Part shown: in pieces, positions 2,306 through 25,130 of the stretch | How positions within the stretch are numbered: position 1 is the first letter of the stretch | Layout: each line of letters starts with the position of its first letter | Translations under genes and position numbers: made by a program | Virus record (IMG/VR): IMGVR_UViG_3300047558_000137 | Span: 62,001-126,000 of that record | Length of the DNA stretch: 64,000 bases | Direction: 5' to 3' (one strand) | The notes under the pieces: model-generated | Databases searched by the model: none | Told to the model about the DNA's origin: nothing | Seen by the model: the letters and a program-made list of their open reading frames with translations, nothing else

Positions 2306-3267
2306 AATTTATTGTAACCGGTGGTGCTGGCTTTATTGGACACAATGTTGTTAGACAGCTCGAATCACAAGGGCACGACTGCTTTGTATTAGACAGCGTA
2401 ACAGATTATGGGTTTGTTAATGCAGACGAATTAGCATACCTGTACCAAGAACGTAGATCACGTATGAAGTCGGGAGTACATCATATTGATCTCAGAGATC
2501 ATAAATCTGTAGAAGATTTCTTTCGTGCGTTTAACGGTGTACATGCAGTAATACATTTGGCCAGCTTTCCCCGACAGAAAGTAGTTGGCCAAAATCCTAT
2601 ACTAGCCAGCGAAGTAATGAGTACCAGTCTAGTAAACATGTTGGAACTAACAAGACAGCTTGGTATACCTAAGTTTGTTTATATTAGTAGCAGTATGGTC
2701 TACGGAGACTTTAATGATGATGTCACTGAAGACTACAACTGCCGACCACAGGGACAATATGGAATTATGAAACTAATGGGAGAACACCTTGTTAAAGATT
2801 ATACTCGTCGTGGTTGCTTTGATCATGTTATTATTCGTCCCTCTGCTGTCTATGGCGAGTACGATGTCGAAGATCGTGTGGTTAGTAAATTCATGCTTAG
2901 TGCTATGCGCGGCGAAACTCTACGTGTTAATGGAGCAAATGAAACACTCGATTTCACGTATGTAGAAGATGCTGCCGCCGGTATCGTGGGCGCCGCATTA
3001 AACCCTAAAGCGGTTAATGGAACATATAACATTACAAAGTCGCATAGCACAAGTCTATTAGAAGCGGCTGCATTGGCTATTAAGATTGCAGGAAAAGGCA
3101 GTGTTGAAGTTCGCGACAAGGATGCAGATTTCCCATCACGTGGTGCATTAAACATTGCAGCCGCACGTAGGGACTTTGGGTTCAATCCTACTGTAGATGT
3201 TGAAGAAGGATTTCAACGTTACCACGATTGGTTTAAAGCGAGTGAGTTTTGGGCACCAAAGCTATAA
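2302..3267 (+). CDS. NAD-dependent nucleotide-sugar epimerase/dehydratase (extended SDR)
   Basis: VTGGAGFIG Rossmann motif, SSSMVYG, YGIMK (YxxxK). Confidence 0.9.
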   Translation: MKFIVTGGAGFIGHNVVRQLESQGHDCFVLDSVTDYGFVNADELAYLYQERRSRMKSGVHHIDLRDHKSVEDFFRAFNGVHAVIHLASFPRQKVVGQNPILASEVMSTSLVNMLELTRQLGIPKFVYISSSMVYGDFNDDVTEDYNCRPQGQYGIMKLMGEHLVKDYTRRGCFDHVIIRPSAVYGEYDVEDRVVSKFMLSAMRGETLRVNGANETLDFTYVEDAAAGIVGAALNPKAVNGTYNITKSHSTSLLEAAALAIKIAGKGSVEVRDKDADFPSRGALNIAAARRDFGFNPTVDVEEGFQRYHDWFKASEFWAPKL

Positions 3268-17315: not shown

Positions 17316-17497
17316 TTAACTTTTAACCATACACGATCGTGTACATAATGTATAATCATAAGACCTATATGTATACCTATCGCTGTTGATAATCCTGTCC
17401 ACACAGCGGTAAAAATTACTGCCAGTAACCGGTATGTTACAATTCTTGCTAAAGTTCTTTTATGTGTTTCTATCATTTGCCCCAGCCGTTGCCCCAC
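17300..17497 (-). CDS. DUF2061-like small membrane protein
   Basis: THKRTLARIVTYRLLA...YVHDRVWLKVKWG. Confidence 0.6.
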   Translation of the reverse strand: MGQRLGQMIETHKRTLARIVTYRLLAVIFTAVWTGLSTAIGIHIGLMIIHYVHDRVWLKVKWGDN

Positions 17498-18330
17498 AAG
17501 TCAACGTGTAGACGTGGACTGTAGTTGTAACCTTTGCTTAGTGCCCAGTCTGCTACCCGAACACGGTTGGCGGCATAAGGAGTAACAACACCACCTTGTG
17601 GCATTACATAGACAGGACCATGAAACCCAACAGCACGATATTGACCAACTGCACGATCTACTTCTGCAAAGTGTTCGTCTGTTTCCACAACAAACTTCAA
17701 GTAGGTAAAGCCGTAGTCTTGGTACATACGCACAATCTCTGGACGAATTGCTTCGTCCCATGCTTCGCCACTTGCACTTAGCTTGGGACTTACTGAGAAT
17801 GTAATTTCATTGCCAGCAATATCAACCCAGTCTAAGATGTAGTCAATAAACCTACCTTGCAGAGTTTGTGTACCATTTGTTTCGAATGTGATATTACGCA
17901 AGTCCTGCATACGCTCATGTTCTAATAACTCTTGATACGCACGTTGCCAACCTAGCAATGGTTCACCACCTGTAATTACAAGATGCACATCGTTGCCATT
18001 GTCCTGCACCCAACGATGATTGGGTGTAAGAGCTAGCATTTGATCTACTAGATCTTTTGTTTCTACTGTTGGGCTTAGATCTTTAAAAGCAGGATGCCAC
18101 GATGCGTAGCTGTCGCATCCAGTATTAACTAAGGGTAGACTAGTAAAGTCTTTATACAAGTGGACATTCTTTGCCACTTCGTCGGCCTCCGTTGACGTTT
18201 CGCCTGGCTTGCAGCCAAAGCCTGCACATGTAAAATTACATCCAAATGTGCGTAAGAATACTGATGGTACGCCAACAAAACGGCCTTCACCTTGAGCGCT
18301 GTAAAAGAGTTCACTGATTTTTAATTTCAT
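17473..18330 (-). CDS. queE: 7-carboxy-7-deazaguanine synthase (radical SAM)
   Basis: ISELFYSAQGEG...VFLRTFGCN, ITGGEPLL, FETNGT, SVSPKL, PRLHVDLWG. Confidence 0.92.
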   Translation of the reverse strand: MKLKISELFYSAQGEGRFVGVPSVFLRTFGCNFTCAGFGCKPGETSTEADEVAKNVHLYKDFTSLPLVNTGCDSYASWHPAFKDLSPTVETKDLVDQMLALTPNHRWVQDNGNDVHLVITGGEPLLGWQRAYQELLEHERMQDLRNITFETNGTQTLQGRFIDYILDWVDIAGNEITFSVSPKLSASGEAWDEAIRPEIVRMYQDYGFTYLKFVVETDEHFAEVDRAVGQYRAVGFHGPVYVMPQGGVVTPYAANRVRVADWALSKGYNYSPRLHVDLWGNGWGK

Positions 18331-18498: not shown

Positions 18499-19213
18499 GG
18501 ACAATGTTTTTTATTAAGTCTATATTAAGTTGCCCTTGCAACCATTTTCTATAATAGTTTACAGATTCTTCTGTAGGCAATGTACCTAAATTTTTAAGAT
18601 GTGTAAAAAATTTAGTTTCGCTATATAGGTCCAATAAATTAACAACATAGTCGGCGTCTGTTGTTAACTCTGTCGGTAACCCGTCCCTAAACAAATCTAC
18701 ATTGTTACGAAAGTAATCAACAAGTTGATTAAAGTTTACTGGCAATTGAGTAGGCAAGTTAATAAATTGGGAATCAATCATTGCCCTTTGTTGTATAGAA
18801 TCCTCACCTAGGCATACTGTTGCGTTAAACCTTGCCCAGTTTTCTAGCACAATCGGATACAGTTCTTGACTATAATGTATAGCAACAGTAAAAAGTTGAT
18901 CACCAAAATGTTGTTTCATTGGTAATAACTGATTATGATATACAGTTGCTAACCATACGTGTCTTTTTTCACTTTCGAGGAAAGATTCCAACGCATGAAT
19001 ATTATTAGGCCAATTAATATTTCTCCATCTGCATCTATTAGCCTGTGTAAACATTTTTACATACGGCTCAATAGTTGAACTATTATATAAAAGAATGCCG
19101 TTATCGGTTATATCAGCAATGCATGGCCGAAGCCATGCATTATTAAATCCACCTAAACAAATAATGAATACATCGGCTACAGTAGCCTGTGGAAAAACTC
19201 CAAAATACAGCAT
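18485..19213 (-). CDS. Hypothetical protein (AT-rich)
   Basis: 242-aa ORF coupled to the isocitrate lyase stop. Confidence 0.6.
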   Translation of the reverse strand: MLYFGVFPQATVADVFIICLGGFNNAWLRPCIADITDNGILLYNSSTIEPYVKMFTQANRCRWRNINWPNNIHALESFLESEKRHVWLATVYHNQLLPMKQHFGDQLFTVAIHYSQELYPIVLENWARFNATVCLGEDSIQQRAMIDSQFINLPTQLPVNFNQLVDYFRNNVDLFRDGLPTELTTDADYVVNLLDLYSETKFFTHLKNLGTLPTEESVNYYRKWLQGQLNIDLIKNIVHGKK

Positions 19214-20421
19214 TAATGGAATTGATCAGCTTCGGTTGAATGTTTGTTAGCTACAGTAGAAGTTGCGCCCACTGCTTCACTAATCAAGTCAAAATAACCA
19301 ACGCCAACTTCACGTTGATGTTTGACAGTAGTGAATCCACGTTCTTGGGCCGCAAACTCACGCTGTTGCATTTCACTATATCCAGCCATACCACGTTCCT
19401 TGTATGCTTCTGCTAATTCAAATGTAGCTAAGTTAACTGAATGGAATCCTGCTAATGTAATAAATTGGAACTTGTAGCCTAGTTCACCTAGTTCACGCTG
19501 GAATGATTCACACTCGGCTTCGCTTAAAAACTTACGCCAATTAAAACTAGGACTACAGTTATAAGCAAGCATTTGATCAGGGTACTGTGCGTGTATAGCA
19601 TCGGCAAACTTTCTAGCTTGTGCAATATCAGGCGTACTAGTTTCGAACCATAAGAGATCAGCGTAAGGGGCATAAGCAAGACCTCGGCTAATACAAGCAT
19701 CAATACCATTTTTAAATTTGTAAAAGCCTTCGTCAGTGCGTTCATTGATAATAAAGTCCTTGTCCAATGGATCATGATCTGATGTGATAAGTGTTGCGGC
19801 TTCGGCATCTGTGCGAGCCATAATAACTGTGTCAACACCTGCAACGTCTGCGGCTAAACGTGCGGCATTTAGTGTGCGAATCATTTGTGATGTTGGAACA
19901 AGAACTTTGCCACCTAAGTGACCGCATTTCTTTTCACTTGCTAACTGGTCTTCAAAGTGAACACCTGCCGCACCTGCTTCAATCATATGTGTCATTAACT
20001 CGTATGCGTTTAATGCGCCACCAAAGCCTGCTTCTGCATCTGCTACGATAGGCAAGAAATAATCTGTTGTTACTTTGCCTTCACTATGTTCAATCTGGTC
20101 TGCACGACGGAATGCGTTGTTGATACCTTTAACTACACGAGGAACACTGTCAACTGGGTATAGTGATTGGTCCGGATATGTAGTGTTTTGTGTATTATTA
20201 GCAGCCGCTACTTGCCATCCGCTTAGATAGATGGCCTTTAATCCTGCTTTAGCATGTTGAACTGCCATTTGTCCATTGTATGCACCTAATGTATTAACAT
20301 AAGGCTCATTGGCCAATAATTCGCGTAGTTTGTGTGCTCCACGCTTCGCTAATGTGTGTTCTACTTGTAAACTACCTTGTAGCCTACGAACTGTTTCTTG
20401 TGTATAATTTCTTTTCTTCAT
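19213..20421 (-). CDS. aceA: Isocitrate lyase (glyoxylate shunt)
   Basis: [64 protein letters not shown]; likely start MKKRNY at 20421 with AAGGA SD. Confidence 0.95.
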
Positions 20422-20431
20422 ATATTTCCTT

Positions 20432-20647
20432 TTAAGTTCCACAATCCATGCGCCAAGGACACATAGATAAAGTAACAGTTGCACAATCATCCTGACCAAA
20501 ACATCGTGGTTGATTGGTTCTCTTTAATCTAATTATTGTGTGAATCTTTTTGCGTTCTTCGCTATTGCTATGCCCTGTATTAGAGAGCATGGCTTCTTCA
20601 TTGAGCAATTTTTGCAGCTCACTTAATCCAGAAGATTCTCGTTCCAT
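20432..20647 (-). CDS. Possible small Cys-containing protein
   Basis: ORF fills the queD-aceA gap; C-terminal RC...DC...MCPWRMDC; start uncertain. Confidence 0.4.
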
Positions 20648-21177
20648 TCTCGGTGCCCTTCACGGTATGCCATGTTGCTTTGTGTTTCACGTACCTCAAC
20701 TCTGTAGCACCACAAACGTTCAGCTTCTCCTGGGCCCCACATCTCGGGGATGTAAACGCCATTGACATACTTGTAAAGCATATCTGAGAGTGCTTCGCAT
20801 CCTAGTGCAGGAAGTACAACAATCTTGGCCATTTTCTTTTCTTGCAACAGTTTAAATGTTTCCATTTCTGGATCATCTTGTGCAACAATTAGCGTGTGGT
20901 CAAATTGATCTTCTAGTGTCTTTTTTAGTTCTTTAAGGCCGCCGTAGTCCGCGGCCCAATTACGAACGTCTAGGTCATTGGTTCCAAAATAGAACTTCAT
21001 ACTAAACGCATAACCATGAATCAAATTGCAGTGACTATCCGCACGCCACTGACGGTATGCTACTGGAAATGCATTGTGATATTCTTTTGTACTTGTGTAC
21101 TTGTATTGTACTGGTCGGGTGTTTTGTAAGTTTTCTTCTAGATGACGAATCAAGTCGCCGGTTGATGAGTTTGCCAT
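20623..21177 (-). CDS. queD: 6-carboxytetrahydropterin synthase
   Basis: HCNLIHGY, DYGGLK..K..L..QFDH, E.L, VRET.SN; AGGAG SD. Confidence 0.88.
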   Translation of the reverse strand: MANSSTGDLIRHLEENLQNTRPVQYKYTSTKEYHNAFPVAYRQWRADSHCNLIHGYAFSMKFYFGTNDLDVRNWAADYGGLKELKKTLEDQFDHTLIVAQDDPEMETFKLLQEKKMAKIVVLPALGCEALSDMLYKYVNGVYIPEMWGPGEAERLWCYRVEVRETQSNMAYREGHREWNENLLD

Positions 21178-21184
21178 TGTGAAT

Positions 21185-21250
21185 CTCCTATAAGTTAATA
21201 TAGGCTTGCAGAATTTGTATAGCGGGATGAATGCCGAGAAAGGCCGCTGG
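21185..21250 (-). promoter_or_regulatory. Candidate preQ1-I-like riboswitch/structured leader of queD
   Basis: AGCGG...CAUC-CCGCU stem followed by AUACAAA; CCUAUA/UAUAGG hairpin overlaps the SD. Confidence 0.45.
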
Positions 21251-21259
21251 TTGAATTAG

Positions 21260-21265
21260 TATTTA
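21260..21265 (-). promoter_or_regulatory. T4-like late promoter box TAAATA
   Basis: GATAAATAC overlapping the PRTase stop, upstream of the queD leader. Confidence 0.5.
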
Positions 21266-21796
21266 TCTCCACCAGTGTTCCCATGGAAAAACACACCAAA
21301 TATCAATCTCTTGTTTGTTGATAGTATGACCAACATAGTTAACATCTTTAAACTCGCTAGCATCGTTATTAATCAATGCCGCGGTACGCACGTTGGCGCC
21401 CCAGATGTCTTGCCAAGCAGGATCATTAGGCATACAACTGCTACGCCAATCCTCTTGTATCCATTTGAATGTTGCACCACTGTCATTAATGTCGTCAACA
21501 ATCAAAATGTTCTTACGCTTGAACTCATCACTTTGCCCATCTTCGTAGCCAAATGCATCTTCGCTCATCCAGAGATTACTTTCTGGGCCAAAGTCGCTGT
21601 CACGCAGACTTGCATTAAGACTATGCATAGGAATGTTAAAGTAATGACTCAACATTACAGCAGGAGTAAGTCCACCACGTGATAGGCCTACGATATAATC
21701 TGGGCGCCAGTTATCTGCAACGATTTCGCGGATAATATTATGAAGCCACCCATTAACTTCATTTTGTTCGTAATATACTTTAGTAGTAGAACTCAT
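21263..21796 (-). CDS. Type I phosphoribosyltransferase (xanthine/guanine PRT-like)
   Basis: YIVGLSRGGLTPA and ILIVDDINDSGAT (PRPP-binding loop). Confidence 0.88.
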   Translation of the reverse strand: MSSTTKVYYEQNEVNGWLHNIIREIVADNWRPDYIVGLSRGGLTPAVMLSHYFNIPMHSLNASLRDSDFGPESNLWMSEDAFGYEDGQSDEFKRKNILIVDDINDSGATFKWIQEDWRSSCMPNDPAWQDIWGANVRTAALINNDASEFKDVNYVGHTINKQEIDIWCVFPWEHWWR

Positions 21797-22142
21797 TTAC
21801 TTCTTTCAAATTATGTTTAACAACACGTTCGTTGAATTTTAACAGAAACATACTGGCAGTACTAGCATCTTTGCCTAAAAAGTGTAGGCGAACATTACCA
21901 GTTCCGTCTTGCATATAATGACAGGCTTTGCTGTTATAAGACACATATGATCTGCGTGTATGCTTACCTCGGTGCGAGTATTCATCTTTGTGTGATACTG
22001 TACCTTCGATTAACCTATACCAGTCAACTATCTCGTCGGTTAACTGATCTATGTCAATAGTGATACCGTATGCTACAGTACAGCCTGGTGGTAGTGCGAT
22101 CATTTTGCTCTGGCAGACAAATATTCTTCGTGCTGTACCCAA
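21780..22142 (-). CDS. Hypothetical protein
   Basis: 120-aa ORF; start uncertain. Confidence 0.55.
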   Translation of the reverse strand: MGTARRIFVCQSKMIALPPGCTVAYGITIDIDQLTDEIVDWYRLIEGTVSHKDEYSHRGKHTRRSYVSYNSKACHYMQDGTGNVRLHFLGKDASTASMFLLKFNERVVKHNLKEVNEFYY

Positions 22143-22558
22143 CCTTTGTTGGTTAGGAATCCCCAGTCACGCCGCTGTGGGCCTGGCATAAACAAGGTCC
22201 AACAATCTACTGCGGGGTCAAGTTCAATGCGGTGGTAACTGTTTGCACCAGCCATTCTAAAGCTGCCTGGGCCACACCAGCGAGCAATTTCGCCAATCTT
22301 TTTTCCGTTGGCATCAAACTGTGGACGCCATTCCCAGTAGCCGCCTTTTAGGATAAGAGTGGCATAAGGCCAAGGGTGGTCATGCACATCATCGGGATCT
22401 GATTTGAGAAACTTGTGCAAAAACACATTAAACGGAAACCGTGTACGGTCTGTGAGAAAGAGGTAATATCTTTCAAGGTATGGTTCATCATTGATCCTAT
22501 CCATAACAATACGCTTGCGACCCATTCGTTCAAGCAGGTTGAGAAACTTAGTAAACAT
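22100..22558 (-). CDS. Cupin-fold protein
   Basis: LHKF..SD..D.HDHPW...LILKGGYWE...HRIEL...WTLF. Confidence 0.65.
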   Translation of the reverse strand: MFTKFLNLLERMGRKRIVMDRINDEPYLERYYLFLTDRTRFPFNVFLHKFLKSDPDDVHDHPWPYATLILKGGYWEWRPQFDANGKKIGEIARWCGPGSFRMAGANSYHRIELDPAVDCWTLFMPGPQRRDWGFLTNKGWVQHEEYLSARAK

Positions 22559-23785: not shown

Positions 23786-24529
23786 TTAACGCGGAGCGAA
23801 CTCTTGCTGTAGCTTGATGTTATCAAAGAACTCTTTTTTAGTACTTTGATCCCGTTCAAATGCGCCTTTTAGTACTGTGGTCTGTGTGAGGCTACTGTGC
23901 GCCATAATACCACGATTCTCGCAGCATCCGTGGGTAGCTTGGATATATACCGCAACATCATTCGATCCAGTGGCAAACCCGATCTCACGAGCGATGTCCA
24001 TGCAAAGTTCTTCCTGAAGTGTTCCGCGGCGAGCACACCATTGTGCGATTCTAGTATACTTACTAAGTCCGATGAGCTTTGGCCCAGCAATAATTCCAAT
24101 ATAAGCCACGCCTGACACAGGCTGATGGTGATGGCTACACATGCTCTTAAGCTCACTACGCACAACCAACATGCCTTCGTATCGTCCTTCTGTGTCATTT
24201 GGGAAAGCCGTTGCGTTAGGTGTTGGTTCGTAGCGACCAGCCATGATTTCATTGTAGTACATTTTTGCAAGGCGTCTTGCTGTACCTTTACTGTTAGGAT
24301 CATTTTCTCTATCAATCAATAATGTGTCTAGTACACGTTCAAATGCTTCTGTAGCTTCGTCGATTAGTTGATCTTTCATTTTGTCGTCGATGTATTCGCT
24401 GACATTATCTCCTGCCCAGAATCTTTTGCCATCACGTTTAAATTTAAAGCGAAGGTGATCGCATACTTTGCCTAATCCATATCCGCCGTCTCCGGCCATT
24501 GCATCTAGTGCTGTTTCTTTATCTGTCAT
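23786..24529 (-). CDS. folE: GTP cyclohydrolase I
   Basis: GTARRLAKMY, SMCSHHHQP, IGLSKYTRI, RRGTLQEEL, HGCCENRG. Confidence 0.93.
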   Translation of the reverse strand: MTDKETALDAMAGDGGYGLGKVCDHLRFKFKRDGKRFWAGDNVSEYIDDKMKDQLIDEATEAFERVLDTLLIDRENDPNSKGTARRLAKMYYNEIMAGRYEPTPNATAFPNDTEGRYEGMLVVRSELKSMCSHHHQPVSGVAYIGIIAGPKLIGLSKYTRIAQWCARRGTLQEELCMDIAREIGFATGSNDVAVYIQATHGCCENRGIMAHSSLTQTTVLKGAFERDQSTKKEFFDNIKLQQEFAPR

Positions 24530-24530
24530 T

Positions 24531-25130
24531 TTAATCCTTGATAGTGATTGTTCTTAAATCTGGGTACTGTACTAATACAGGGTCAACTGGAAACTCTTTA
24601 AGTTTTTCTAGTAAAGCAAGTCCTCGATCGGCTTCTTCAATAGTAGGCTTATAGTGATATCCAACTCTAAACTCTCGTTGTTCTACCCAGGGTGATGTAT
24701 TTAGGTCGCGGCCATCATAGCGCATTAAAATTATTGCATCATATGCAGCCTTGTCGTCTAACAGTATAGCACCTCCGCGGCCGATTTGTAAAGGCTTTCC
24801 TTGTCCAAAGCTGAGACATTGCATCGTTCCTGCTCGATACATATTCTTTTCTAAACGTCTAGCACTATCCCATATTCTAGTTAATCCAAAAGGATATTCT
24901 CCAATCCATTGTTTAGGCGAATGATTTTCATACATGTACTTAATTTCTAATTTATGCATAAGCATAGGGATACTCAGATAGGTAAACGGCGTCATAATAA
25001 CTTCCTGTACCTGCTCATAACGCATACACAACTCAATTGCGTGTGTACAACAGTCAGTCATGACGGCGTAAGGAGCACCTGTATACTCTGCTAGTGCTGT
25101 TTCAAATTGTTTAATTTTATCAAATGTCAT
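24531..25130 (-). CDS. Short DegT/DnrJ-like PLP-dependent aminotransferase
   Basis: FE..LAEY.G..YAV.TD.CT.AI.L, WDSA, LSFGQGKPL, GGAILLDD; only 199 aa. Confidence 0.7.
   Translation of the reverse strand: MTFDKIKQFETALAEYTGAPYAVMTDCCTHAIELCMRYEQVQEVIMTPFTYLSIPMLMHKLEIKYMYENHSPKQWIGEYPFGLTRIWDSARRLEKNMYRAGTMQCLSFGQGKPLQIGRGGAILLDDKAAYDAIILMRYDGRDLNTSPWVEQREFRVGYHYKPTIEEADRGLALLEKLKEFPVDPVLVQYPDLRTITIKD

Follow-up and report, generated by a model that had tools for sequence, protein, structure and literature searches.

A conserved pseudoknot in the queD leader of freshwater phages is a riboswitch candidate resembling the class I preQ1 aptamer

We have studied the 85-nt spacer that precedes the queD gene of a giant freshwater phage, and find that it contains a small RNA pseudoknot conserved upstream of queD in related phages, with 160 unique versions. 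The element resembles the smallest known preQ1 riboswitch, yet matches no catalogued RNA family, and its second helix overlaps a predicted helix that hides the ribosome-binding site. We consider it a strong candidate for a new riboswitch variant, in which binding of a small molecule is inferred to turn translation on.

The queD leader and its components

The DNA analyzed (the window) comprises 64,000 nucleotides, bases 62,001-126,000 of the 374-kb IMG/VR virus record IMGVR_UViG_3300047558_000137. The sequencing runs that contain it are freshwater metagenomes. The spacer lies on the minus strand, between a phosphoribosyltransferase (PRTase)-like ORF and a QueD/PTPS-family ORF. [quoted passage not shown] All of the strings that it described are present in the sequence, and the observation is thus confirmed. 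Read 5′ to 3′ on the minus strand, the spacer contains the ATAAATA box, AGCGG, an 18-nt loop, CCGCU, AUACAAAUUCUGCAAGCC, the CCUAUA/UAUAGG hairpin (21204-21199 with 21192-21187), the SD and the ATG at 21177. The features, in the anatomy deduced below, are as follows.

21263-21796 (-), phosphoribosyltransferase-like gene, upstream
21260-21266 (-), ATAAATA box, a probable phage (T4-late-like) promoter element overlapping the PRTase stop codon
21244-21248 (-), P1 5′ strand, AGCGG
21236-21243 (-), L1, CCUUUCUC
21228-21235 (-), P2 5′ strand: variable core GGCAU, then U (of a U·C mismatch), then CA
21226-21227 (-), L2, UC, with the C directly preceding the P1 3′ strand
21221-21225 (-), P1 3′ strand, CCGCU
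21211-21220 (-), L3, AUACAAAUUC
21203-21210 (-), P2 3′ strand: UG (paired), C (mismatch), then AAGCC
21187-21204 (-), P3, sequestering hairpin CCUAUA-UUAACU-UAUAGG, whose first two C are also the last two bases of P2
21185-21189 (-), SD sequence AGGAG, of which AGG lies in P3
20623-21177 (-), queD-like gene (PTPS/QueD family, 184 aa)
17473-18330 (-), queE-like radical SAM gene, downstream
23786-24529 (-), GTP cyclohydrolase I (FolE) gene, upstream

In this single sequence the stem is not significant. The pattern AGCGG-N18-CCGCT is expected 0.54 times per window, and the minimum free energy fold is no better than that of shuffled sequences (z = −0.47). A scan for consensus promoters and terminators showed nothing at the site. 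The significance of the element emerges only on comparison with related phages.

The element is conserved upstream of queD

A protein-guided search of IMG/VR returned 80 loci in which QueD is 77-96% identical. A 23-nt core of the leader (TCATCCCGCTATACAAATTCTGC) recurs upstream of nearly all of them, and a pattern scan added at least 120 more loci. Together these give 160 unique versions, of which 156 lie directly before a QueD homolog, two have an unannotated ORF inserted between the motif and queD, and two are cut by the contig end.

A covariance model constructed from 146 of these versions finds a full-length match (48-69 bits) in 75 of the 80 protein-derived loci. One further locus has a copy with a degraded P1, one copy is truncated by the contig end, and the three loci without any match have no upstream DNA. 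Every related QueD locus that has upstream DNA thus carries the element. The model finds exactly one real copy in the 374-kb genome of the phage itself (64.2 bits); the next hit, at 13.8 bits, is a chance match in other sequence.

The model also finds a second, degenerate copy (32 bits) in related locus L009 (positions 1926-1978; same contig as locus L088). In this copy P1 is shifted to ACCAG/CUGGU and the A-U pair of the P2 extension is broken. It precedes an inserted 309-aa methyltransferase-like ORF, just upstream of the intact copy. Loci L144 and L182 carry other ORFs between the motif and queD, so that the leader seems to be an insertion hot spot.

Two covarying helices form an H-type pseudoknot

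The absence of covariation in P1 among homologs had been named beforehand as an outcome that would count against a riboswitch. P1 is in fact paired in 99.3% of cells, with compensatory changes at three of its five pairs, where the pair types are AU/UA, GC/CG/UA and CG/AU/UA. The two top pairs are invariant G-C. RNAalifold predicts P1 without guidance.

The sequence-only reading had proposed an extra GCC/GGC hairpin within the loop. This is not supported, because L1 has the consensus NCUU, in which the first base varies (C, U or A), the second (C) is invariant and the third (U) is nearly so, followed by 0-6 variable bases. The GGC instead covaries with the downstream tail, the 3′ part of the loop (GGCAU, 21235-21231) pairing with AAGCC (21207-21203) to form P2. 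In the window one A·A mismatch interrupts this core. We split the sequences by tail length so that gap placement by MAFFT would not break the register, whereupon P2 is 81.6% and 85.4% paired in the two subsets, with double-sided changes at three pairs in each. Sliding the partner by 1-3 columns lowers the overall pairing to 31-66%. The observed pairs include GGCAU/AUGCC, GACAU/AUGUC, GACUU/AAGUC, GACGC/GUGUC, GGCG/CGCC, GGUG/CACC, GGGC/GUCC and GACA/UGUC.

In an alignment-free control, each loop fits its own tail better than tails dealt at random, with a mean contiguous helix of 3.68 against 2.94 ± 0.09, or 3.65 against 2.62 ± 0.15 after collapsing to 46 loop/tail classes. Many of the sequences are related, however, so that these shuffle statistics overstate independence. 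The highest mutual information in the entire element is found at the P2 pair adjacent to the junction (UA 67, AU 38, GC 17, CG 12). P2 then continues through a conserved U·C mismatch into C-G and A-U pairs, formed by the CA of UCAUC and the UG of CUGC. The A-U pair is found as A-U in 155 sequences and becomes G-C in four otherwise different sequences, with none of 159 discordant.

The unpaired bases are nearly invariant. L2 is usually two bases and always ends in C, which is present in all 159 parsed instances and preceded by U in 137, C in 16 and A in 6. A scan demanding a base other than C at this position gave 13 hits, about the chance expectation, and all were unrelated. L3 is a 10-nt strand with the consensus WUAYAAAYUC, containing 4-6 A. 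Positions 3, 5, 7, 9 and 10 are invariant and position 2 nearly so; this was partly enforced by the search pattern, but the same holds in the loci found through the protein. The resulting anatomy is P1, L1, P2 (7-8 positions, with a variable 4-5 bp core), L2, P1′, L3 and P2′, in a compact element of about 46 nt (21248-21203).

Position in the transcript

In 118 of 158 relatives an NTAA(A/G)TA box lies within 45 nt upstream of P1, usually ending 5-11 nt before it. A sigma-70-like promoter is found there in 29, with its −10 usually ending 7-8 nt before P1, and 12 have both. The genome contains 65 ATAAATA boxes, 47 of them on the minus strand, and 45 of the 65 lie 10-120 nt upstream of an ORF of at least 80 aa. 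This is consistent with a T4-late-type promoter consensus for this phage, and the relatives of its QueE are mostly in KVP40-like T4-type phages. We therefore read the box as a T4-late-like promoter, with transcription probably starting a few bases after it, and conclude that the aptamer begins at the 5′ end of the mRNA. Contigs of relatives from three freshwater metatranscriptomes cover the aptamer core and queD, although these run on upstream of P1, do not define a 5′ end and could be DNA carry-over.

We also considered whether the conservation might act at the level of DNA, with the element serving as a sigma-70 promoter. Of 93 leaders in platform group G1 (see below), 66 (e.g., loci L001, positions 2950-3000, L172 and L169) match an extended −10 promoter at 10 or more of 12 positions, with a −35 of TTTACA or TATACA in L3, a spacer of 17-18 nt and a −10 of TGnTATAAT (or close to it) in the P3 loop. 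This would produce a short transcript lacking the aptamer. However, groups G2 and G3, and the copy in the window, lack the −10 yet retain the element, and a promoter cannot explain the compensatory changes in P1 and P2. The covariation thus refutes this as the sole explanation, which we regard as very unlikely, although an added internal promoter in G1 remains possible.

P2 overlaps the helix that hides the ribosome-binding site

Downstream of P2 the leaders fall into at least four designs. In G1 (n = 93, including the window) a hairpin CCUAUG/CAUAGG hides the first bases of the SD. In G2 (n = 41) GUCRUC is paired with GAUGGC, hiding the start codon, and in G3 (n = 24) GYCAUUG is paired with CAAUGGC. 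There is one singleton, with UCUAUU/AAUAGA. The hairpin arms are CCUAUG/CAUAGG in most relatives, and CCUAUA/UAUAGG in the window.

In all 159 leaders the predicted fold of the platform pairs at least two of the first five bases of the P2 3′ strand with the SD/AUG zone, and the SD or AUG is paired. The 5′ arm of the sequestering helix starts at tail position 2-4 in nearly all. In the window the P3 hairpin is worth −6.2 kcal mol-1, falling to 0.0 once the two C shared with P2 are withdrawn. P2 and the sequestering helix are thus mutually exclusive, and this relation has been kept while the helix itself was replaced several times, which is the hallmark of a switch. The leader therefore has the general form of a riboswitch, with a conserved putative aptamer and a platform of mutually exclusive pairings in the 5′ UTR of a metabolically coherent gene.

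Comparison with preQ1-I and other pseudoknots

The class I preQ1 aptamers are small H-type pseudoknots with a canonical P1, a specificity cytosine directly before the P1 3′ strand that is preceded by U (type I) or A (types II and III), an A-rich L3 in the P1 minor groove and, in translational members, SD bases inside P2 (PMC11625349). The phage element shares the pseudoknot topology, the 5-bp P1 topped by G-C, the invariant C (mostly preceded by U, as in type I), an A-rich L3 of about 10 nt that begins WUA, and a position in the leader of a queuosine/7-deazaguanine gene, where it is predicted to act on translation. Its L3 resembles in sequence the 10-nt L3 of the Tte aptamer, UUAACAAAAC (PMC7641330). 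A search for preQ1-I examples found none in three MAGs or in 101 genomes of one class, so that the comparison rests on the review and on the printed Tte sequence.

Nevertheless, the element is not recognized by the family model. A scan with the Rfam PreQ1 model (RF00522; gathering score 39 bits) gave no hit at gathering on the window and none at E ≤ 10 on 21100-21350, where the leader scores below 10 bits. Over the whole phage genome it listed only three unrelated places, at 11.4 bits or less, and there was no hit on the most Bsu-like relative (locus L017), whose P1 is AGAGG/CCUCU. Scans with the other Rfam 15 families, including preQ1-II and preQ1-III, returned only chance-level hits to unrelated families. 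L1 has 4-10 nt against 2-3 in preQ1-I, and P2 has 7-8 positions with a conserved U·C mismatch, against 3-4 bp. The P2 3′ strand does not contain the SD, which lies 14 nt or more downstream, and overlaps instead the 5′ arm of the separate sequestering helix, so that the predicted logic is ON rather than OFF. We therefore do not assign it to the family, but describe it as a preQ1-I-like variant or derivative.

An ordinary class I riboswitch that binds preQ1 or preQ0 and represses queD, as in bacteria, would account for the topology, the C, the A-rich L3 and the association with que genes. However, the failure of the model, the placement of P2 and a phage pathway that stops at CDG (see below) make this unlikely.

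Other pseudoknot riboswitches (preQ1-II, preQ1-III, SAM-II/V and guanidine-III) are also small aptamers in which the ligand stabilizes the second helix, but none matches in the Rfam scan, and their conserved loop sequences and gene associations differ. The T4 gene 32 leader also has an H-type pseudoknot at the 5′ end of a phage mRNA that is involved in translational control. That element is a nucleation site for cooperative protein binding, with no known sequence similarity to the present one and no linked sequestering helix.

A proposed ON switch

In our interpretation the spacer encodes the 5′ leader of the queD-queE mRNA. A small molecule, probably a heterocycle with a guanine-like pairing face, would bind at the P1/P2 junction against the invariant C and stabilize P2, as the ligand does in preQ1-I (PMC11625349). 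The last 2-4 bases of the P2 3′ strand are also the first bases of the sequestering helix, and binding should therefore open the ribosome-binding site and turn on translation of QueD (and QueE). The analysis establishes the conservation, the exclusive link to queD, both helices through their covariation, and the overlap of P2 with the sequestering helix, whereas ligand binding by a small molecule, the identity of that molecule and the ON direction are inferences. We are highly confident that this is a functional structured cis-acting RNA, and consider it probable that a small molecule is the effector. The complete proposal, including the ON logic and a ligand with a guanine face, is only slightly more likely than not. 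An ON switch before biosynthetic genes is unusual, and we know of no preQ1 riboswitch that works in this way.

The interpretation given by the sequence-only reading is thus partly supported. P1, the SD-covering hairpin, the promoter-like box, the conserved cis-acting RNA tied to queD and the missing QueC all hold, and the likeness to class I preQ1 aptamers is closer than it had perceived. The intraloop hairpin is not supported, the PreQ1 model does not match, and the predicted wiring is the opposite of that of known preQ1 switches.

A protein might alternatively recognize the pseudoknot as a translational operator, in the manner of the T4 gene 32 leader or RegA-type operators. Conserved single-stranded bases and a covarying pseudoknot fit a protein site as well as a ligand pocket, and the promoter box and the KVP40-like QueE relatives suggest a T4-like phage. 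However, no candidate RNA-binding protein is linked to the locus, where the neighbors vary apart from FolE, QueD and QueE. The size, the invariant junction C and the resemblance to preQ1-I point to a small ligand, and preservation of the P2/P3 overlap across four platform designs is typical of riboswitch expression platforms. We regard an operator as rather unlikely.

With its extension, P2 may also be stable enough to form without any ligand, in which case the element would be constitutive or a protein target. As a ligand-independent leader it might only protect the mRNA end, beginning as it does at the predicted transcript start, or hold the sequestering helix open as a translation enhancer. 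Yet protection would require neither invariant L2 and L3 bases nor a sequestering helix reinvented in several forms that always overlap P2, and we consider this unlikely.

The conserved operon is FolE > [motif] QueD > QueE, with the PRTase gene before or after queD, so that the motif would control the steps from H2NTP to CDG but not FolE, which lies upstream. Candidate ligands with the required pairing face are CDG, 7-deazaguanine, guanine or G nucleotides, and the pterin H2NTP. The last would give feed-forward activation, and so fits an ON switch best.

A more far-reaching possibility, which we hold only tentatively and think less likely than not, is that this is a previously undescribed, phage-only riboswitch class, derived from or convergent with the preQ1-I fold. 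It would act as an ON switch sensing not preQ1 but a pathway intermediate or precursor with a guanine-like pairing face, for example dihydroneopterin triphosphate made by the separately expressed FolE, or CDG, 7-deazaguanine or guanine, and would in this way gate synthesis of the 7-deazaguanine used for phage DNA hypermodification.

Few riboswitches have been described in phages, and in the literature searched none is linked to the 7-deazaguanine DNA-modification genes that phages use against restriction. If the element binds a 7-deazapurine or a pterin and switches ON, it would extend the preQ1-I fold to a new ligand or a new logic, show that giant phages regulate their DNA-modification pathway through a metabolite, and provide a compact ON-type aptamer for engineering. 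Its small size, many natural variants and two covarying helices make it directly amenable to in-line probing, ITC and crystallography, and the variable P2 core and four interchangeable platforms are a natural experiment in riboswitch modularity.

Distribution

The element was found only in uncultivated freshwater phages. There is no match at the DNA level among the 50,697 deposited phage genomes of INPHARED. The nearest cultured-phage queD genes (ACP17, BUDD and R5C) abut or overlap the upstream gene, and give no hit with the covariance model at queD. A pattern scan of 185,579 species genomes gave two small MAG contigs, binned as Bacteroidetes and Chitinophagales, both of which carry the motif followed by queD and are probably phage DNA. 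The only other hit was a chance match inside an Idiomarina peptidase gene. Literature searches found no description of a queD-leader motif.

The gene neighborhood

The product of the queD-like gene matches Pfam PTPS (54.8 bits), and its nearest solved structure is a CPH4 synthase (7v0f). This family reads AYRQWR...HCNLIHGY, so that two of the three zinc-binding His of canonical QueD (AHR..., HGH) are Tyr. The motif is invariant in the window, in one IMG/VR relative (L009) and in three cultured phages (loci L214, L215 and L216), and the NCBIfam QueD score is only 32 bits against a cut-off of 89. The chemistry may thus differ from that of textbook CPH4 synthase.

FolE is identified by Pfam (131 bits) and NCBIfam, and the QueE-like enzyme by PHROG 2076 (181.7 bits). 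The genome has no match to QueC (PF06508), nor to TGT/DpdA (PF01702), a model that distant DpdA3/DpdA4 types (PMC10516641) could escape. Without QueC, preQ0 and preQ1 are not products of the phage pathway, which ends at CDG. The PRTase (Pfam Pribosyltran, 46.8 bits; PHROG 8995) is of the xanthine/guanine type. That it travels with FolE, QueD and QueE while QueC and TGT are absent suggests a nucleotide-level route from CDG, as in tubercidin or toyocamycin biosynthesis, rather than base exchange in DNA.

Between queD and queE lie an unannotated 242-aa ORF and a full-length isocitrate lyase gene (19213-20499, minus strand; NCBIfam NF011645, 692 bits). Only 1 of 198 related loci has the isocitrate lyase there, and it looks like a recently acquired auxiliary metabolic gene in a giant phage. 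Also on the minus strand, a 199-aa ORF (24531-25130) matches only the N-terminal ~50 residues of DegT-type aminotransferases and may be a fragment, while a 152-aa ORF (22100-22558) matches a PHROG annotated as cysteine dioxygenase.
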